A DNA stretch of 64,000 nucleotides from the sequence record NC_070957.1, one strand, 5' to 3'. A model generated the notes under the pieces. That model saw nothing but the letters and a program-made list of their open reading frames with translations. It was not told the DNA's origin and made no database searches. Below are positions 3,592 through 48,538 of this stretch, piece by piece; position 1 is the first letter of the stretch, and each line of letters starts with the position of its first letter. The translations under genes and the position numbers were made by a program.

Positions 3592-3735
3592 ATGTACACT
3601 ACGATCAAACTTAAACCTCAAAACGGCGGCCAGAAATCCGCTGAAGAGAGGCGTAACGAGATGAGACAATACGCTCAATCTCAATTTCCAGGAATGGTTG
3701 TAACCAAAGCGTACACACCCAGTCCTTCTGCATAA
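3592..3735 (+). CDS. 47-aa hypothetical protein (not in ORF track)
   Basis: AGGAG SD, ATG; MYTTIKLKPQNGGQKSAEERRNEMRQYAQSQFPGMVVTKAYTPSPSA; own promoter and terminator. Confidence 0.7.
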   Translation: MYTTIKLKPQNGGQKSAEERRNEMRQYAQSQFPGMVVTKAYTPSPSA

Positions 3736-3756
3736 TATAACTATTATGCGTAAATA

Positions 3757-3804: not shown

Positions 3805-4497
3805 TTATGCAAAATACATTGCGGCTTTTGCTTGTTTCTGCATGTCGGTCATTTTGTTCCGTTTCTTGGTGATTGCGCATTTGGAACTCTTCTGGAGTTT
3901 CAGAATAGTTTCAACGTTGTGCTGATCTTCGGAAAGGATATGGACGACCGTGTCGGATGTTTCTTCGAGATACTTGAGTGCTTTCTTGTACTTGGTGCGA
4001 TAGCTCTCGAATACGGCTTTATCCAGGAACATGCGGTCCTTGGCATCAACTGGTCGACCACTGGCTTCTACATCGTTGAAACGTTTCACGAACGTCTCGT
4101 GAGTGATATCAACGAAGAAGATAATGTCGGGGTTGATGTTGTACCCGTAGGTTTGCAGCAGGCGACGGTTGTATTCCAGTACTTCTACCATACTCACAGC
4201 GTCATCGGATTGATACACCATGGAAGACACCACGTTGCGATCAGAGATGACATCACGGCTATGTGAAAGGTACGGATGGATGACCTGCTTAAAAGCTTCA
4301 ACACGAGCTACTGCGTAACCCTGGATCTCTTCATCCTTGGTCAGCGTGTTGGATACCAGCTTTTCTTTCAGTGCTTTGAAGGACGGAGAACCGGTAAAGG
4401 GTTCCATCACTTGTTTGGCTTTGGTGTGCTTGGCGTGCGCATTTGCCAGTGTGGATTTACCTGCGAAATCCAGACCTTCATAGACTATGTAACTCAC
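3805..4497 (-). CDS. tmk: Thymidylate kinase
   Basis: YEGLDFAGKST P-loop, MEP, DRNVVSSMVYQ, PDIIFFVD. Confidence 0.9.
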   Translation of the reverse strand: MSYIVYEGLDFAGKSTLANAHAKHTKAKQVMEPFTGSPSFKALKEKLVSNTLTKDEEIQGYAVARVEAFKQVIHPYLSHSRDVISDRNVVSSMVYQSDDAVSMVEVLEYNRRLLQTYGYNINPDIIFFVDITHETFVKRFNDVEASGRPVDAKDRMFLDKAVFESYRTKYKKALKYLEETSDTVVHILSEDQHNVETILKLQKSSKCAITKKRNKMTDMQKQAKAAMYFA

Positions 4498-5990
4498 TTG
4501 TAATACTCCAGGGTTAAAGTTCGAATAACGATGTACAGCATCAGTGCTGTGCGGAGACTAGAGACTGTGTATTGAGTACGAATACCAGTCATAGCACGGA
4601 TGATTTCATCACCATTACGGCGAAGTTTGTGTAACAGGGCGTTGGAAGACTTGTTGGATGTATAAGCACCACGCAGCTTATAAACCACGTTCTTCAAATC
4701 GGTGTGACGGATTGAGTTGGAAGAGAGATATTCAAAAAGATGTATGACGCAGTCGTCAACAAATTCTCGATAGTCTTCACCCTTCTTGTGATTGTACTGT
4801 GCGGGGAAATCACGAATGACCATCGTGAGCTTATCCTCGAACTGAGTACTGGTTCTCGAATCATCAACGGCGCGCGCTGCGTAACCAACCAGTTCTTGCT
4901 TGTAGAAACTGGTTCCGTCGTTAACAACACCATTGATGTAGTTACGATACTTGTTTACGTGCTTTTGCACATCTTTGATATTGACTTCACCGTCCATCAT
5001 GGCGAGTCCATTATCAGTCGCTACCAGGTCAACGTTATCTTTGATTTCATAGAGGACTTTGGTGTAATCGTTGATAACACCTTTGAGCCGTGACTCCATG
5101 TCATTCACCATGTAAACAATGCGTTTGTCATCGTTCAACTTAGTGAATGTATCAAAGTGAATACCTGTCTTGGGATTGATAACGAATTCCCCACGAGCTT
5201 TGAAGAGTTCGTTCCAACTACCGAACCGCTTGATATCAAACTTCATGGAAAGTTTGTTGTACGCGGTTTGGGCAACACTGGGTTTAACCAGGTAACTGAA
5301 GTAGTGGTTCATGATGGAAGTCATGATCCGATAATGGAACAACATCACCAGGTTGATCAGTGCTTCGTCCTTCATATTCTTGGGAAGGTTAGAAACCCAG
5401 ACCTTGTGCATCAAGTAAACGATGGACAGGTTAAAAGCATCGGATGATACTTTAAAGTCTTTGTTTACCCAGCGAGTCCTGATCAGTTCATCACGAAGTC
5501 TGACTTCGTCAACATCAATGATGTCAGAGAAGAAGTTGTTACGATCCGCTGTTTTGAAGACGATTCGGTGTGTCCCCAAATAAGGTGTTCCGAAGAACTC
5601 GGTGTGATCGTTATCTTTGGTGGCGAAGCCGTAAACAAAGCGACGGAGTTTACTCACCCAACGCTGATCGATTACCAGGTCTTCCACGAGACCGTCAAAG
5701 ATGTCCTTGACTGCGTTATCTCGGTCATAGACAAAGTTAGGCGAAAGCGCTTCGAACCCTGTCATGTATTCGATGTTGTCGAGGTACGACTCCATACCAC
5801 CGTACTGGGTGAGTCTGACTTCTGGACCAAACAAGGTCTCAGGTTCAAACTCTTCCATTCCTGTCAGGATTTGTTCGTCCTGACGCATGGCGCGCATCAT
5901 CTGTTCGTAGTCACTCAGTTCCGTACCATCGGCATGCTGAGGACCTATCAGACGGAACTTAACTGCCCCGCCAGTGATACCATTGTACAT
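4494..5990 (-). CDS. Conserved phiKZ-like virion structural protein
   Basis: 498 aa; resembles recalled phiKZ-group virion proteins (DHTEFFG..LG.HR..F); N-terminal G-x-E motifs. Confidence 0.6.
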   Translation of the reverse strand: MYNGITGGAVKFRLIGPQHADGTELSDYEQMMRAMRQDEQILTGMEEFEPETLFGPEVRLTQYGGMESYLDNIEYMTGFEALSPNFVYDRDNAVKDIFDGLVEDLVIDQRWVSKLRRFVYGFATKDNDHTEFFGTPYLGTHRIVFKTADRNNFFSDIIDVDEVRLRDELIRTRWVNKDFKVSSDAFNLSIVYLMHKVWVSNLPKNMKDEALINLVMLFHYRIMTSIMNHYFSYLVKPSVAQTAYNKLSMKFDIKRFGSWNELFKARGEFVINPKTGIHFDTFTKLNDDKRIVYMVNDMESRLKGVINDYTKVLYEIKDNVDLVATDNGLAMMDGEVNIKDVQKHVNKYRNYINGVVNDGTSFYKQELVGYAARAVDDSRTSTQFEDKLTMVIRDFPAQYNHKKGEDYREFVDDCVIHLFEYLSSNSIRHTDLKNVVYKLRGAYTSNKSSNALLHKLRRNGDEIIRAMTGIRTQYTVSSLRTALMLYIVIRTLTLEYYK

Positions 5991-6007
5991 ATTCCTACCT
6001 ACTTTTA

Positions 6008-6856
6008 TTAGCGCTTACGAGGAACAAGCATACGGATCTGATCAGCCACCCCTTTGGGATCTGCATAAGCCAGATACTTCTTGATCTCATCCTCGAAGAA
6101 CATACGGAATTCATTATGGGCGTCTGCGTAACCCTGGATGTCATCCTGGAGTTCGTTAACGCTCACACCAAACTTGGCAACAGCCTCTTGCATCCCTCGC
6201 CGACAGTTGCGGTAGATGTACGCCTTTGTGGCCAGTACACACAGGTATGCAAACTGATCGTACATTTTTGGTGGGATGATTGAGAAGTGCTCGTCGTAGC
6301 TAAGGATTACTTTAGCCAGCATGTTGAACAGTGCCGATCCTGCGTCACGGATAAGGAACGAGTTGTTACCCACCATGGTAAATGACGTGAATGTCCGCTG
6401 AACGTTACTATCGTCCAAAGCAGAGATCATACGGTTTACCGCAGAGCCCATCGATCCGCCACCACCGCACTGAGGACCTGCAACCAGGTTATAACCGTTG
6501 CTTATCATGGAATTCAAATTACCAGGATAAACCTCGATCACTGAGAGGATGCGTCGACCCCCAGTAAGGAAGTCAGGAACATTGACGTGAACGATACCGC
6601 CTTCCAGGTTCTGTACTTGTGCAGAGCTCAGATCAATGGTGCTAGTTTCACCACCTGCAACGTTAAGAAGTGGAGCGACCATTTTCAGTATCACCTTTTC
6701 CCGGATACCTTGTTCAATAGAGAACTCGGTGTTGATCGGACCCCAGGAATGTCCGTACCCTTTATTAGGGTTGTCAAAGGCGATTTCCAACAAGTAAGGC
6801 GAAATGTCGTTAACGCCGTTTACCACGTTGTCGATCGCAAAATCGACCATATTCAT
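6008..6856 (-). CDS. Conserved phiKZ-like virion structural protein
   Basis: Start moved to MNMVDF (AGAGGG SD); FSIEQGIREKVI..V...LNVAGG motif. Confidence 0.55.
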   Translation of the reverse strand: MNMVDFAIDNVVNGVNDISPYLLEIAFDNPNKGYGHSWGPINTEFSIEQGIREKVILKMVAPLLNVAGGETSTIDLSSAQVQNLEGGIVHVNVPDFLTGGRRILSVIEVYPGNLNSMISNGYNLVAGPQCGGGGSMGSAVNRMISALDDSNVQRTFTSFTMVGNNSFLIRDAGSALFNMLAKVILSYDEHFSIIPPKMYDQFAYLCVLATKAYIYRNCRRGMQEAVAKFGVSVNELQDDIQGYADAHNEFRMFFEDEIKKYLAYADPKGVADQIRMLVPRKR

Positions 6857-7418: not shown

Positions 7419-7489
7419 TTCATTTCCTTAAAAGTTAGTAAGTTGCAATATATTAACCTTTGGGTAATTTTTAATAGAACATAATAAAA

Positions 7490-7521
7490 GCCTCTACTCT
7501 CCGGTTAGGGAGAGTAGAGGC
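7490..7521 (-). terminator. Intrinsic terminator closing the minus-strand RNA island
   Basis: GCCTCTACTCTCC/GGAGAGTAGAGGC stem, followed by TTTTATT on the minus strand. Confidence 0.8.
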
Positions 7522-7524
7522 GAT

Positions 7525-8387
7525 TACTGACGTGTACTACCTTCCCATTACTCACTCACTTCCCGATTATAGATCCGGCCAAAGACCTTATCGGGATCAA
7601 GAGAGTAATAGGCTGATAGCAAGTACGTGAGGGGTTCCAAACGGAAACCGTCACTTCTACCAACTTCCATGCAGAGCAAGCATGGCGGACCGTTCGACTT
7701 CGTTATTAAGGTGCTCTCTGAAGTATAGTCCCCTCAGCTACCCGCCGCGGCCTCAGCCGGGGGTTTTTGCTAAGGGCATCAGCCTTATATAACGTCGTCA
7801 CTGTACTGGCACTAACGAATAGAACCATCGGCGCACGGTTAGGGTACCTACGTGACTCGCGTCCGTTGGGACGGGAGATGGAACTTCCTTATAAAGGAAG
7901 AAAGGGTTTTGAACCCAGGATGCCCTGATCCATTGTAATAGACCATCGCTTCACTCCTTTCATTAGAACCTAGCATGCCTTTTCGGCCAAAATGGTTCAT
8001 CAGAGTTACTGTATATGGGAACTGTTCCGTGGGTTCAAAAAGGTATCCCGGACAATGACTAAGTAACCACACTCCACCCCATCAGCGCAAGCTAATGTAA
8101 GGTACGTCACTATCCAGGGAATAGGGCCGAGAACACGCTGTCTTTTAGAAGGATCGCTTTTGAGTGGTAAGTTCACTCATCTACTGCCAACCGACTTCCC
8201 CGTAGGGCTTCGTCTTAACTAACGTGTCTCGGTGATTCGTACTAGTATCTATCTGGTATGTTTGACACCTTGGGTATCATGGCAAACAGCCTAGGATTAA
8301 CCTATGTACAAATATAGTTGAGAGTGTAAGTAAGAAACACGGTAACAGGAGGCGGAGAAACCGTATGAATACACTTACACCCTCAAA
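7525..8387 (-). ncRNA. Candidate large structured ncRNA (~860 nt)
   Basis: No credible ORF; many local and long-range helices; A-C mismatches on + become G-U pairs on -; lies downstream of tRNAs and before a terminator. Confidence 0.6.
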
Positions 8388-8466
8388 GGGTGAGAACTCC
8401 TGGAATCGAACCAGGGCAATCCCGCGATGGGTTGTGCGGGCGACTTTCCTTTCGTCTTCAGTTCTC
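8388..8466 (-). ncRNA. tRNA-like element with aberrant anticodon arm
   Basis: Acceptor GAGAACT/AGTTCTC, T-arm CCTGG-TTCGATT-CCAGG, 10-nt anticodon loop, 3' ACCC rather than CCA. Confidence 0.7.
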
Positions 8467-8468
8467 GT

Positions 8469-8755: not shown

Positions 8756-8831
8756 TGGCAGGCAAGCAAGGATTCGAACCTTGGACATCTGGTTTTGGAG
8801 ACCAGCGCTCTACCAACTGAGCTACTCACCT
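8756..8831 (-). tRNA. trnW: tRNA-Trp(CCA)
   Basis: Cloverleaf, loop CTCCAAA, GGTTCGAATCC, encoded CCA. Confidence 0.95.
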
Positions 8832-9018
8832 GTAATACGAATTCACATTACTACACACTCGCCGTTCTTCCTAGTTTCCGTTCCGAACGTTCCACGGTTC
8901 ACCGTCACCATATACTTTATCCATTCGGACGCCATCTGTGGCTATCAAGTACTTAGGTCCATATTGGTTATGTCTGTTGACACCCGTGTGTAAACCAGAT
9001 TAATCTGGGGTGAAAATA

Positions 9019-9095
9019 TGGCAGGGATAACGGGGCTCGAACCCGCGACCTCCGGCGTGACAGGCCGGCACTCTAACCATCTGAGCTACATCCCT
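9019..9095 (-). tRNA. trnD: tRNA-Asp(GTC)
   Basis: Cloverleaf, loop CTGTCAC, encoded CCA. Confidence 0.95.
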
Positions 9096-9101
9096 AAAAT
9101 G

Positions 9102-9200
9102 TTTACCCATCACATGTTCTTACATCGTAGGCGGCTGTGGATCTCAGGTATCTACCGAAGTAGCCTGACCAGATAACCCCGAAACCACATGACAGGTAAA
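9102..9200 (-). ncRNA. Candidate small structured RNA between tRNA-Asn and tRNA-Asp
   Basis: ~15-bp terminal stem with several G-U pairs; internal CAGG-CTAC-TTCG-GTAG-ATA-CCTG hairpin. Confidence 0.5.
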
Positions 9201-9201
9201 T

Positions 9202-9277
9202 TGGCGGTTCCTGCTGGACTTGAACCAGCGACATATGCATTAACAGTGCACCGTTCTACCTACTGAACTAAGGAACC
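9202..9277 (-). tRNA. trnN: tRNA-Asn(GTT)
   Basis: Cloverleaf, loop CTGTTAA, encoded CCA. Confidence 0.95.
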
Positions 9278-9283
9278 TGAATA

Positions 9284-9548
9284 TGGAGCCGACTAACGGA
9301 ATCGAACCGATGACCGGTGGAAACCATTGCTTCGGCCAGGGTGTTGAACAGCGCAGAGGACCAGATCAGGCGAGCATCGAAACCATCGATGATCACGTTG
9401 CCCTGGAACATGTGCTGGAGCTTGTTGNNNNNNNNNNGTCCCCAGAATCTCATTGTCAGATTAGGGCGATGAACGTGTTCGAGATTACGGATCTCGATAC
9501 TCGCCCCTTTGATGACCGATACACCTCTACCTACTGAGCTAAGTCGGC
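9284..9548 (-). tRNA. tRNA (probably Thr) broken by assembly gap; anticodon arm missing
   Basis: 5' half GCCGACTTAGCTCAGTAGGTAGAG (9525-9548) and 3' half GGTCATCGGTTCGATTCCGTTAGTCGGCTCCA (9284-9315) flank chimeric sequence and 10 Ns; resembles enterobacterial tRNA-Thr(TGT). Confidence 0.65.
9313..9524. other. Assembly chimera and gap
   Basis: 9313-9427 is the exact reverse complement of 34553-34667 (chmA); Ns at 9428-9437; 9438-9524 reads as an unrelated coding fragment. Confidence 0.85.
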
Positions 9549-9581: not shown

Positions 9582-9782
9582 TCAACCAGCATTAAAAGAA
9601 CCTAAGATCAAACCACGGACATTGCCTATGGTTCGACCAATCAAAGTGACTTCGATGCGATCAATAGGCAAATAACCATTCGCCAGATCAATCGCTTCCG
9701 ATAAGTCGACAGCCGCGATAACCACTGCGTCGTACTCGTCATAGTCCCAATCATCGGTTCTTTCAACTTTATAGATGTTCAT
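9582..9782 (-). CDS. 66-aa small phage protein (YDxY family)
   Basis: GGAG SD; MNIYKVERTDDWDYDEYDAVVIAA...GLILGSFNAG; similar to 34923 and 35211 ORFs. Confidence 0.75.
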   Translation of the reverse strand: MNIYKVERTDDWDYDEYDAVVIAAVDLSEAIDLANGYLPIDRIEVTLIGRTIGNVRGLILGSFNAG

Positions 9783-9852
9783 ATCGACAGTCTCCGTTGT
9801 TAGCGATTTGGCTTTCCAACGTACTACCAGCAATATCGAACATCTTGCATAA

Positions 9853-9997
9853 CAATGAGTTTCCCAGAGTTTGACATTTTCTATCCATCATGGTCCCCGA
9901 GACCGGATTTCGGGACGCGCCGGTGCTACTTCGATTCTAGACCGAAGTGTAATGGTGTTTTTTACTATTCGGGGATTTTTGTCAAACCACTTCATTG
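9853..9997 (-). ncRNA. Structured RNA motif, copy 1
   Basis: CAATGA/TCATTG outer stem, GTTTGACA/TGTCAAAC inner stem, motifs shared with copy 2. Confidence 0.6.
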
Positions 9998-10006
9998 TTT
10001 ATTTAT

Positions 10007-10145
10007 CAATGAGTTTCCCAGGGTGTAGAGTATTTTATCCGCTGCGGGCAGGCCAGGTGGGTCTTCGGGACGCACCCACAGTTGGCTCAAGAGAGATGCC
10101 TTGTGTTTTGGCGACTGGCCTTTATTTCTCTACACTACTTCATTG
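10007..10145 (-). ncRNA. Structured RNA motif, copy 2
   Basis: CAATGA/TCATTG outer stem, GTGTAGAG/CTCTACAC inner stem, shared GTTTCCCAG and TTCGGGACGC. Confidence 0.6.
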
Positions 10146-10998
10146 AAAGGTGTTAGCTGTTTCTCTCTTGGAGCCCAGCATCGTCACCAGGATAAAACCT
10201 TTGTGTGACAACACTCAATTAACACCTATATCATTGTGACACCTTCTCGGTGTGATACATAGTCGATCACCGCATTGGTTAGATCCCTGATGGACGACTG
10301 GACGCTGCGTATAGCAGTGTTTGTCTCCTAGGTGGGTATCGCCAGCACCGTGTCGGCTATAGGATGTGATCACACGAGGAAACCAGAGGGATGTCCAACC
10401 CTTTTCAGTTACATGTGATCACGAAAGCTGTTGTTAACAAAGTATAATAACTTGTTGTTACTAAATACTTTTCAATTGGCTCTCTTTGAAAGCTAATAGA
10501 AAAGAGGTCTTCACAAACCGTATGGAAGACCTTTGAAAAATGTAAAGGATTAACAATGAAAAATAAACCAACCATACACGAAAGCCAACACCAATGACCT
10601 TCTATATAAACTCTCTTTGAAGAGCATATATAGAAAGGGGGTAGGAAGACTACCCCGCGGGTAAAAGCAATAACCCAAGAACGTGCAGATATTGAAAGCG
10701 GGAGCTTTCTTGATAATGACTCTTGGGTGAATCAGTATTAAGAAAGCAAGGGATAAAGCTGCGCACAAAATCCCTTTGCTTGTATTACGTAGGAGTTTAT
10801 TCAATGGCTTCGTTTTGACCACTGTCGCGTTCAGTAATCAAAAGGAAGCATTTTTGTACATATAATAACAGACACCCATAACTTTTCAGGTAGATATTAT
10901 CTACATGAGAAACCCGTTGGTATCTTAATTGTATGGTACAACTGTGTGGGATTTCCTACACTATATGATTACCTCTATCATCATAAGGAAACAGAGTT

Positions 10999-24402: not shown

Positions 24403-24517
24403 GATGATTGAAAGGGAACCCTTCGGGGTTCCCTCTCTTCTTTATACATTTTATTTTTGTACCCTTATACTTTTTGAAACAGATATTATCACTGTGTAAA
24501 GAAGGGAGAAAATTCTA

Positions 24518-32593: not shown

Positions 32594-32831
32594 GTAAACC
32601 TCGTTGATTTAATTCTTCAAAATAGTTTCCTATTATATGTAAACAAATGTCAAGGAGTAATCCTTGGCTTTGCGCGGGAGACGTCCGTCTTGTAATAAAT
32701 CTGGTACAAAAGATCGTTAAAAATTGACGTTCTATAAATTTTCAGATATATATTATTAGAGTGTAATAGTAGAACAGATTGTTCGAAATTCAAGACGTCC
32801 TGAGTTTTAAAGCAATAAAGGATAACATGTA

Positions 32832-35572: not shown

Positions 35573-36988
35573 GTGAGTACCATTATCCGAGTTCTTAAGG
35601 ATTACTCCGAAGAACAATTACTTCCTCAAAATCTCTTCAACCAGATTCTCGAGGGCACGGGGTATATTCCGGAAATGGATGATGAGCGGTTCTATACTGC
35701 AATCTATCCCCATTTCGAAAACTACGACCAACGACACGACAACTGCACAACACTCCCGATCTACCTGAATGACCACGACTTTCGAATCGAAGAAGATCGT
35801 GAACGTATCGTGCAAGCCCTTCGTACCGAGTATGAAGGTAACACATTCGATACGGTTGCAGTTTGTTCACCCAGCTGCGGTAAGTATCGCGGCAACATGT
35901 ATCTCAACTCTGGGATTGTCTGTGACGTTTGTGGCGAGACACCAAGTCGTCCACTGAGCGAACAGATCGAGACCAAGGTTTGGTTGAGAACTCCACCCAG
36001 GGTTTCTGGTTTCCTGTCACCGGCTATATATGAGGTATTCCTCAGTAAGCTCAAAACCAAAACACCGAAAATCAATTTCGTTCAGTATTGGATGGATGAA
36101 GGTTATCGGAGAGACAAACGGTTCCGTGATCCAGTAGGTGAAACACCGGCGTACAAAATGGCTCAGAAGCTCAATGCTTTTAGTAGTGCCATTGGTATCG
36201 ACTTCGGGTATAATAATTTTATCGATAACATCGATACGATTATCAATGCAGCAGTCACCCAAGACTTTATGGGGATCCTCGATCTCAATGAAGTACAACG
36301 TGACCATTGCACCCGGTTCTGGGCCAAGTATAAGGAGTTTGCAGTTAGCAACTTCCTTCCGCTTCCGAACAAGATTGCCACGGTGATCGAATCTGACCAA
36401 CGTGACCGTTACGTCAACAAGGAAAAGACTGATCTGGAAAAGATCTTCTTTACCATAGCAGATATGTATCACGAAATGGACCATCGTTCTGTTCAGAACG
36501 AAGTTCTGTTCGGTAAGAACTATTTCGAGATGCAGGCAGTGATGCTCAAAGTGATGAAAGAGATTCTCTTTAAGAAGAAGGGGATGTTCCGATATCACGC
36601 CGGGGCTGGTAAACTGCCATTTACTGGGCGCTCCATCATTACCGGTGAATCAGGCGTTTGTCGTTCTGATACCGTGGTGGTTCCCTGGCTTTATGGCATC
36701 ACCTGTTTGAACCATCATCTGACCAACTGGTTGTACCGTCGCGGCTATACACCCAAAGCGGTTAAGCGGATCATCCGTGAATCTGCCAACTTCCGTCACC
36801 CGGTGATAGAAGAGTTCTTTGACTGGGTGGAGAACAACCGCTATGCTGTAGCAACAGTAGGTCGTAACCCATCGATTCAGTTCTTGTCATCAAGAACTTT
36901 CTTCATCAAGTTCAACCGGGATATTGAGGATAAGTCTATTCGTATCCCAATCACCTGCGTGAAAGAATTTGGTGCTGACTTTGACGGT
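35573..36988 (+). CDS. Non-virion RNAP beta'-like subunit (phiKZ gp55-like), exon 1
   Basis: Zn-finger CGKY..CDVC, GRSII, RNPSI, ends GADFDG. Confidence 0.9.
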
Positions 36989-37298
36989 AAACTAAATTGC
37001 TGTCATTAAACCCTTTCAATTGCTGGAAACCCCTTAGAGCTCGATCAACTACAACGCAACCAGAAATGGTAAACGTGAATGTTTGAAAATGATCGAGATT
37101 GGGCAATCAGCAGCGAAGACTCTAAGTACATCTGTGATAGATGGATATGAGTAACGTTCAACGACTACGTTCCCAGAAGCCTGGGATGATGAGGGCACCC
37201 TAAAGGGTGAAGATATAGTCTCTACCGGTATGAAAGTATCGGAAAGATCATTTAGCGAATGATCATAAAGCCGTCGAGATGACGTTACAATGTAATAG
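36989..37298 (+). mobile_element. Group I intron, 310 nt, no ORF
   Basis: P AATTGCTGGAAA 37018, Q AATCAGCAG 37105, R GTTCAACGACTA 37156, S AAGATATAGTCT 37210; P1 GACGGT/GCTGTC with U-G at 5' splice site; terminal G. Confidence 0.92.
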
Positions 37299-43284: not shown

Positions 43285-43387
43285 CACGTTTAATAAAGAG
43301 CGAGAACTTCGGTTCTCGCTCTAAACTTTTTGCTGTTCTATAAATTAATAGACAGATATTATTAGCGTGTAATCCGTAGGAGGTATT

Positions 43388-48456: not shown

Positions 48457-48538
48457 AACGACTCCTTTAAAATAATTCCCCTATATCTTTTCAACCAGAT
48501 ATTATCTAGTTGTTACACACAAGAAGGGTAATCAGAAA

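Follow-up and report, generated by a model that had tools for sequence, protein, structure and literature searches.

What kind of element occupies a region without annotated genes in the genome of a jumbo phage, and does it act as an RNA? The question is raised by the window (the whole stretch of DNA analysed here, 64,000 nucleotides, nt), which covers the opening 64 kb of the genome of Aeromonas phage D3 (genus Ludhianavirus; MN102098.2, 262 kb); window coordinates are record coordinates. Among the D3 genes are those for PhuZ tubulin, a nuclear shell protein and split multisubunit RNA polymerases, which marks D3 as a nucleus-forming jumbo phage. In its 1.2-kb unannotated region 9783-10998, flanked by divergently oriented genes, a model that saw only the letters of the DNA (hereafter the sequence-only reading) had noticed two tandem modules with a shared outer stem, internal loop and hairpin loop, and had taken them for a functional RNA fold. 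All these elements are present at 9853-9997 and 10007-10145, and the modules are laid out as follows.

10007..10145, minus strand: module copy A, 139 nt, upstream on the RNA strand; source of the covariance model R1, which scores it at 181.5 bits.
9998..10006, minus strand: spacer between the copies, 9 nt, A and U only, AUAAAUAAA, read from the sequence.
9853..9997, minus strand: module copy B, 145 nt, downstream, ending 68 nt before the AUG of the gene D3_0008; matched by R1.

On the minus strand, the two copies have identical 5′ ends (CAAUGAAGU) and 3′ ends (CUGGGAAACUCAUUG), and they have in common the hairpin loop GCGUCCCGAA (10064-10073 in A, 9909-9918 in B), the loop AAAACAC and the junction GGAUA. 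The stems, in turn, are rewritten yet remain paired, just as the sequence-only reading had it. Stem P2 is formed by GUGUAGAG/CUCUACAC in copy A and by GUUUGACA/UGUCAAAC in copy B, P3 by AGGCCAG/CUGGCCU vs. UCCCCGA/UCGGGGA, and P4 by GUGGGU/ACCCAC vs. ACCGG/CCGGU. In the helices of equal length (P1, P2, P3 and P5), 26 pairs can be compared between the copies: 15 are identical, 11 are changed on both sides, and none is changed on one side only or broken. Moreover, R1, which was built from copy A and the proposed structure only, retrieved copy B with 67.5 bits (E 2e-14), while its search of the window and the remaining 212 kb of the 262-kb D3 genome gave no copy besides A and B. A protein repeat was considered and rejected, since the period of 154 nt is not a multiple of 3 and places the copies in different reading frames. 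Taken together, these sequence comparisons show the modules to be tandem paralogues of one self-contained RNA fold.

The strand of the RNA follows from the pairs it tolerates. Copy B has a G-U pair at position 10, and in copy B of the relative LAh10 a C-to-U change in P4 turns a C-G pair into U-G, where the opposite strand would carry an A-C mismatch. Both are tolerated only on the minus strand, thus indicating that this is the RNA strand; the junctions are A-rich there as well.

The closest relatives of D3 could add little to this comparison: the modules of D6, D9 and LAh10 are more than 99% identical to those of D3 and hence nearly uninformative. Exact patterns taken from the shared loops and ends gave chance matches only, mostly inside coding genes, in viral_contigs (four patterns) and metagenome_contigs; the scan of genome_contigs gave at least 120 matches, which were structurally filtered, and among the matches listed there were only chance ones. 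The neighbouring gene D3_0009 was tried as a synteny anchor and abandoned as an ORFan without relatives. The anchor that worked was the virion protein D3_0003, encoded 4 kb away, with ~80 homologues at 40-83% identity and, in addition, 286 phage records. The DNA around these homologues was searched with covariance models rebuilt stepwise (R2 and R3), and the resulting family has 16 members in 13 genomes or contigs, namely the two D3 copies and 14 members recovered from D3_0003 neighbourhoods.

The members fall into two groups. Group 1 (D3-like, seven members) consists of both copies of D3, both copies of L236, a single copy of L225 and two copies of L226, one of them very divergent. Group 2 (nine members) includes the phages Survivor, Kc263, N1M2, pEt-SU, Sureiya, AH04 and SXP01 and the metagenomic contigs L234 and L235. 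The copy number is therefore two in D3, L236 and L226, and one in L225 and throughout group 2. With the family model R3, copy A scored 124.5 bits, copy B 97.7 bits and 12 other members 67.6-112.8 bits (L236 was not among the sources searched). Over 383 kb, R3 gave no further match at E<=1, and it found no module in OBP, PS1, CF8, ZPAH34, AhC3_1, pAEv1810, AP1 or T4. The family is so far known solely from relatives of Ludhianavirus, pEt-SU and OBP, all of them nucleus-forming jumbo phages.

When the copies were aligned with MAFFT, the result disagreed with the structure, and model-guided alignments were used instead. In the alignment of all 16 sequences, which was fitted to the model and is thus biased toward the structure, 92.5% of the pair cells hold standard pairs, compared to 38-41% when the partners are slid by 1-3 columns; 32 of the 38 pairs show double changes, and the observed values were reached by none of 500 shuffles. 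RNAalifold independently predicted P1, P2, P3, P3a and P4, with 24 of 27 pairs compensated. Covariation across the 16 members is seen in P1, P2, P3, P3a, P3b and P4, in accord with the functional RNA fold that the sequence-only reading had proposed. The structural part of our reading, i.e. the fold itself, is in our view highly probable.

The elements of the fold lie at the following positions, all on the minus strand; those of L1 and P3a were read from the alignment, the others from the helix map.

A 10137..10145 with 10007-10014; B 9989-9997 with 9853-9860: stem P1, 5′ strand CAAUGA-A-GU, with a bulged A at 10139.
A 10015..10022, CCUGGGAA; B 9861-9868, UCUGGGAA: L1, asymmetric internal loop, 3′ strand.
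A 10128..10135 with 10023-10030; B 9980-9987 with 9869-9876: stem P2, 8 base pairs (bp).
A 10115..10121 with 10050-10056; B 9969-9975 with 9894-9900: stem P3, 7 bp, enclosing the inner four-way junction.
A 10098..10112; B 9949-9965: hairpin P3a with the conserved 9-nt loop (AAAACACAA in A).
A 10086..10095; B 9928-9948 (8 bp): variable hairpin P3b.
A 10057..10079, L4 10063-10073; B 9902-9924, L4 9907-9919: stem P4 with loop L4 (GCGUCCCGAAG in A).
A 10039..10047, CCG-CAG-CGG; B 9885-9893, CCA-UGA-UGG: P5, small optional hairpin.

P1 clamps the 5′ and 3′ ends of the module, and at its boundary with P2 there are only the one-sided loop L1 (UGGGAA) and a wobble-type pair. P2 leads into a junction bearing P3 and the optional P5, and P3 into an inner junction with P3a, P3b and P4. 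Within the family, P1 covaries among CAAUGA/UCAUUG, CAGCAA/UUGCUG, CAACG/CGUUG, CAGCG/CGCUG and UAACG/CGUUA, and the position between P1 and P2 is A.C, G.U or G-C, i.e. wobble-type equivalents. Five of the eight P2 pairs are changed on both sides between the D3 copies, and all eight show double changes across the family; for P3 the corresponding figures are five and seven of seven. The loops behave in the opposite manner. In L1, UGGG is invariant in all 16 members and the next A is replaced by U only in AH04; CCCGAA of L4 is invariant in 15 of the 16; and the P3a loop follows the consensus N-A-A-R-C-W-N-N-N above an invariant closing G-C pair. The length and sequence of P3b are free to vary. 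P5, which is followed by the A-rich junction AUAAAAUA (10031-10038, copy A), is the weakest helix, paired in 69% of its cells and absent from most group-2 members. Overall, the invariant or near-invariant bases are UGGGA of L1, CCCGAA of L4, AARCW of the P3a loop with its closing G-C, and the A-rich junctions, held in a self-contained fold of roughly 135-148 nt.

The sequence-only reading had also claimed a conserved loop-loop pseudoknot, UCCCG with UGGGA. This complementarity does exist in both D3 copies, and its core, CCCG of L4 opposite UGGG of L1, is kept in 15 of the 16 members; a conserved pseudoknot, however, is not established thereby. The complementarity does not vary between the two D3 copies, so these alone are uninformative on the pairing, and the four CCCG/UGGG pairs never vary across the family, so that covariation speaks neither for nor against it. 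The U of the fifth (U-A) pair is not conserved, being A in all nine group-2 members and C in copy A of LAh10. In addition, position 6 of the P3a loop changes in step with the nucleotide preceding CCC in L4: the two are A and U throughout group 1 (seven members) and U and A throughout group 2 (nine members). As a single event separating two clades, this candidate contact is only a lead.

We then compared the module with described RNAs. The family was unfamiliar to the sequence-only reading, which had suggested an Rfam scan, and the scan gave no module match either at the gathering score or at E<=10. At the gathering threshold of Rfam 15 (4227 models), the window passed with its tRNAs and one group I intron, none on the modules, and the loci of eight relatives with tRNAs only. 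At E<=10, no match was found on the RNA strand of the modules in D3 9600-10500, the sole overlap being the C/D snoRNA sR48 on the opposite strand (20.2 bits vs. a threshold of 40); nor did anything in Pantoea phage Survivor 3300-4150 overlap its module at 3621-3754. Nothing of relevance to the module turned up in the literature, whether queried with sequence strings or by subject. Judged by these searches, the module family is not described in Rfam 15.

Several known systems nevertheless resemble the module in part. Species 1 and 2 of T4 (rnaC and rnaD) are likewise two adjacent small RNAs of a tRNA cluster on the tRNA strand, 139 and 119 nt long and 6 nt apart, compared to 139 and 145 nt and 9 nt in D3. 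However, rnaC has a tRNA-like T arm (CCGGGUUCGAAUCCCGG), which the D3 modules lack, and the two T4 RNAs, unlike the D3 pair, do not repeat a common fold. Kinship with them was rejected, as no similarity in sequence or in fold (upon folding) was seen and R3 had no match in the T4 region. The module does not look like a tRNA-like RNA of the rnaC type, a Y-RNA-like RNA or tmRNA, its L4 being an 11-13-nt loop ...CCCGAA... and not a 7-nt T loop. The phi29 pRNA is also a phage RNA of ~120-170 nt with paired ends and with hairpin and internal or bulge loops of 4-nt complementarity, but its junction architecture differs, no Rfam pRNA match falls on the modules, and pRNA is used by the phi29-type packaging system, not by one like that of D3, which encodes an ordinary large terminase. 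GOLLD and ROOL, too, are phage-borne, highly structured and located beside tRNA genes; they are large, unlike the small stand-alone D3 modules, although the group-2 locus described below reaches ~0.8-1.1 kb. No Rfam GOLLD or ROOL match was obtained in the window or in the eight relatives' loci.

Among ribozymes, twister combines P1, L1, P2 and a multi-way junction with a conserved distal loop able to dock on L1. Twister-sister has the order P1, L1, P2 and multi-way junction with conserved bases in L1 and SL4 (PMC5660989). The D3 module shares with it this order, the conserved L1 and distal loop and an A-rich strand leading back to P2 (PMC5660989). The module differs from both ribozymes in the conserved loop bases and in the extra P3 with its inner four-way junction, and the Rfam models twister-P1, -P3 and -P5 and twister-sister gave no match at E<=10 to the D3 or Survivor module. 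A hammerhead was considered as well (GUA...GGGAAAC), since the module has GU(A/G) beside P1 and GGGAAAC; this candidate was discarded, there being no CUGANGA, no stem II and no Rfam hammerhead match, and CUGANGAG...CGAAAC is absent from the whole window.

In both groups the module always lies on the tRNA strand inside a tRNA island. The order on the minus strand of D3 is copy A, copy B, D3_0008, a disrupted tRNA-Thr, tRNA-Asn, tRNA-Asp, tRNA-Trp and glutaredoxin, with these downstream features:

9582..9782, minus strand: D3_0008, an open reading frame (ORF) of 66 amino acids (aa) immediately 3′ of the modules; its homologues come after the module in all D3-like relatives.
8759..9277, minus strand: tRNA-Asn, tRNA-Asp and tRNA-Trp, downstream of the modules (ARAGORN, Rfam).

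These three are the only tRNAs called in the window by ARAGORN and Rfam, the modules not being among the calls. In group 1, a conserved ORF of 65-75 aa begins 45-70 nt after the last module and is followed by the tRNAs; in L236, one tRNA is found ~200 nt upstream of the modules and another after the small downstream ORF. In group 2, the tRNAs and glutaredoxin come first and the module follows, within an unannotated gap of 0.8-1.1 kb conserved over its whole length. The next gene differs from that of group 1, being a DUF7484 virion gene in most cases, and lies roughly 290-990 nt away beyond a terminator. The group-2 module forms one arm of a three-way junction, whose closing helix covaries (GGGUG/CACCC, GGGCG/CGCCC, GGAUG/CAUCC).

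The surrounding locus is worth describing in its own right. It is a conserved non-coding stretch of ~0.8-1.1 kb, spanning from the glutaredoxin/tRNA genes to the DUF7484 virion gene with a strong terminator at its end, and is present in pEt-SU, Sureiya, Yubaba, N1M2, Kc263, Survivor, AH04, SXP01 and OBP. It is not in Rfam; its conserved blocks include GGGAAGUGUA, UGUAAGACC and GUGAACGGCG, and it may be a new large phage non-coding RNA.

L248 3364-4134; L243 5372-6134; L241 5005-6104; L247 2999-4272: large non-coding locus, group 2 and relatives.
L249 2981-4125; L246 2942-4098; L242 about 5300-6089; L245 5080-6100: the same, continued.
L248 about 3930-4040; L245 5715-5800; corresponding position in the other group-2 loci: hammerhead-like core (CUGAnGAG, stem II, CGAAAC, long stem III hairpin, GUC).

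This core, CUGAnGAGUCC...GGACGAAACGGG...ACCGUC, follows the module at a distance of a few hundred nt and is kept in all nine group-2 members and in OBP. Its layout, as we read the sequence, would be that of a type I hammerhead. With Rfam, the core stays below the thresholds (Hammerhead_3, 15.5 bits; Hammerhead_1, 16.6 bits, E 0.17), for which the length of stems II and III is the probable reason. We know of no such core in GOLLD or ROOL. In OBP, the large RNA is present (nhmmer, 183 and 81 bits), with a plain hairpin of ~50 nt taking the place of the module. D3, conversely, has the module without the rest of the large RNA and without the hammerhead core; homology of D3 to this remainder was sought and rejected, as nhmmer matched only the shared terminator type. 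On the plus strand, opposite to that of the modules, GGTGGGTATCGCCAGCA (10331-10347) agrees at 16 of its 17 positions with the stretch of the OBP large RNA that comes before the module insertion point, which is either chance or an inverted remnant.

How might the module work? We propose that it would be transcribed on the tRNA strand within a tRNA-island precursor and then cut out at its A/U-rich flanks. The 9-nt D3 spacer, which the inter-copy spacers of L236 (AUAAAAUAAA) and L226 (AUAAAUGACAU) resemble, is a possible single-stranded processing site. In the released RNA, L4 would fold back onto L1 via a short pairing of 3-4 bp, CCC(G)/(U)GGG, such that L4, L1 and the P3a loop may form one compact core of invariant bases, the working surface. 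As a portable domain, the module would bind a protein, a small ligand or some other RNA, acting in trans or within an RNA-protein particle, with the two tandem copies doubling valency. The best explanation we can offer, taken as a whole, is a self-contained RNA fold that is released from the tRNA-island transcript by processing and serves as a portable binding domain, and we give it an even chance; for its functional part, namely a binding or scaffold domain so processed and acting in trans or in a particle, we would go somewhat less far and call it tentative. The sequence-only reading had guessed at an aptamer, a protein-binding or a decoy RNA. The genomic surroundings speak more for a portable binding domain than for a switch acting in cis, because the module occurs alone, duplicated, as a side arm in a ~1-kb RNA, or is replaced by a plain hairpin in OBP.

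A number of points weigh against this proposal. Transcription, RNA ends and processing of the module are all inferred by us, and a minus-strand promoter for the modules was not found either by the promoter scan or by k-mer counting upstream of minus-strand genes. The folding energy of the single sequences is only modestly beyond that of shuffles (z about -1.95); these z-scores being weak, it is comparison and not thermodynamics that supports the fold. That P1 and L1 have identical sequences in copies A and B could reflect gene conversion rather than function. The L4-L1 pseudoknot, judged from sequence complementarity and lacking covariation, is plausible but unproven, and copy 1 of L226 has CCAG, which breaks the third L4-L1 pair in the main register and fits CUGG after a one-base shift. 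Finally, the distance of 45-70 nt between the group-1 module and the conserved small ORF is also compatible with a leader or riboswitch.

Such a cis-acting tandem riboswitch or protein-binding leader would sense a ligand or protein through the L1/L4/P3a-loop core and control, through P1, the downstream small ORF and the tRNA cluster. Riboswitches typically have an aptamer-like multi-junction fold that is closed by P1 and keeps its loop and junction bases invariant; there are precedents for aptamers in tandem (glycine and others), and the spacing before the homologous ORF is kept in every D3-like relative. On the other hand, no terminator-like site or hairpin sequestering the ribosome-binding site is seen between copy B and the AUG, and the nine group-2 modules are not next to a gene start but inside the long non-coding RNA, separated from the next gene by the distance and terminator given above. 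Since the downstream neighbours differ between the groups and the module may stand alone, be duplicated, form a side arm or be absent, with a plain hairpin instead in OBP, we consider a switch unlikely. A somewhat smaller probability is assigned to a new class of self-cleaving ribozyme that would cut the tRNA-island precursor, with its active site where L4 docks on L1. The order P1, one-sided L1, P2, multi-way junction, together with the complementarity of a distal loop to L1, is reminiscent of twister and also of twister-sister as laid out in PMC5660989, although the conserved bases of the module are unlike those of L1 and SL4 in the latter (PMC5660989). The unit-length tandem copies would suit a ribozyme, and the hammerhead-like core in the neighbouring group-2 large RNA makes ribozyme processing plausible at the locus; yet the Rfam models of twister, twister-sister, hatchet, pistol, hammerhead and HDV are all without a match at E<=10, and the short 5′ side of L1 has no conserved cleavage dinucleotide (A or G in group 1, C-G in group 2).

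The identity of L4 and L1 in the two copies opens another route, in that pairing between A and B is as possible as pairing within a copy. The module could then be a self-assembling RNA, joined by L4-L1 contacts between molecules or copies into dimers or rings like those of phi29 pRNA, or else a decoy mimicking a host RNA to sequester a host factor or defence protein. Large phage RNAs beside tRNA genes (GOLLD, ROOL) are known to multimerise, and tandem duplication would increase valency, but L225 and the whole of group 2 have one copy only, and no similarity to a host or known RNA was detected in Rfam or, among the matches listed, in genome_contigs beyond chance; we regard assembly or decoy as about as probable as a ribozyme. 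By far the least credible alternative is that the element works as DNA, for instance as a mobile element bounded by repeats, as iterons to which a protein binds, or as an origin. Its inverted repeats at the termini, CAATGA/TCATTG, do resemble the ends of small mobile elements, and the position varies between the phage groups. Against this stand the multi-branched helices, compensatory changes including G-U that are allowed on one strand only, single-stranded segments that are A-rich on one strand, and the absence of a target-site duplication and of any other copy in 262 kb. Finally, portable binding domain apart, we think it possible, though not probable, that a new RNA class has its catalytic or ligand-binding core in the module (a ribozyme with twister-like docking or an aptamer), and that the module, together with the ~1-kb locus of pEt-SU-like phages (module arm, hammerhead-like core, terminator), would define a new large non-coding RNA system tied to tRNA islands and specific to nucleus-forming jumbo phages, possibly serving RNA processing or trafficking in phage-nucleus infection.

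Several further features of the D3 genome deserve mention. In the D3 intergenic region, the scan for sigma-70 promoters and terminators gave results at chance level only. A promoter-like motif of ~40 nt, CYMTAnnnTTTTCAnnnAGATATTATYnnnGTGTA, occurs at 32 D3 sites, all on the plus strand, 5′ of many plus-strand genes (in the window, e.g. at 10874-10913, 24463-24502, 32730-32769, 43336-43375 and 48479-48518). One such site serves D3_0009, just right of the modules, while k-mer counting gave no counterpart of the motif for minus-strand genes. The 295 nt upstream of copy A (10146-10440, minus strand) are non-coding and moderately structured (z -2.1) and contain the palindrome GUGAUCAC twice, 49 nt apart. 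Only short stretches, among them CCCACCUAGGAG, can be aligned with the relative L225. This segment could belong to the same transcript as the modules.

The disrupted tRNA-Thr(UGU) gene (9285-9548, minus strand) is split by an insert that differs among sister phages (L003 2185-2470; L002 2290-2431). In D3, the 5′ part GCCGACUUAGCUCAGUAGGUAGAG and the 3′ part GGUCAUCGGUUCGAUUCCGUUAGUCGGCUCCA are retained, and ~230 nt of unrelated sequence, including a run of N at 9437-9446, replace the anticodon arm. In D6, the insert is in the anticodon loop, with GCAACUGACUU repeated at both ends and a 60-aa ORF inside, and in D9 the interrupted gene is annotated as 'tRNA-OTHER'. The gene is intact in L225, L226 and AP1. 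The last of these, a T4-like Aeromonas phage of the Straboviridae (L009 5098-5600), has a Thr-Asn-Asp-Trp tRNA cluster ~99% identical to that of the unrelated Ludhianavirus phages, which suggests a recent exchange of tRNA cassettes between Aeromonas phages.

Further along the minus strand, ~1 kb between the glutaredoxin gene and D3_0005 (7419-8468) has the 40-aa D3_0006 (7548-7670) as its sole ORF and occupies the position expected for the group-2 large RNA. It holds tRNA-like T-arm fragments (CCUGGUUCGAUUCCAGG), a terminator at its end near 7480-7525, and short matches, CCCUAACCGUG and AACGGUCCGCC, to the optional 3′ extension of the group-2 RNA. The group I intron of the window (36979-37242, plus strand; Rfam RF00028, 88.4 bits) lies at the end of an annotated RNA polymerase beta/beta′ fragment (35573-37009), and this gene is probably split by the intron and mis-annotated.

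The structured RNA described here is new: 16 examples and a functioning covariance model are available, and the invariant core has been delimited (L1 UGGGA, L4 CCCGAA, P3a loop AARCW). Given that phage genomes are densely coding and that compensatory change extends across several genera, this multi-junction RNA of ~140 nt is almost certainly functional. In pEt-SU-like, OBP-like and related phages, the search moreover revealed ~1 kb of conserved non-coding sequence that had escaped annotation and that carries a hammerhead-like core. A ribozyme, aptamer or assembly function of the module, if confirmed, would make it a new class. Nucleus-forming phages part transcription from translation by a protein shell, and little is known of their non-coding RNAs, to which a conserved RNA gene beside the tRNA genes provides an entry point.

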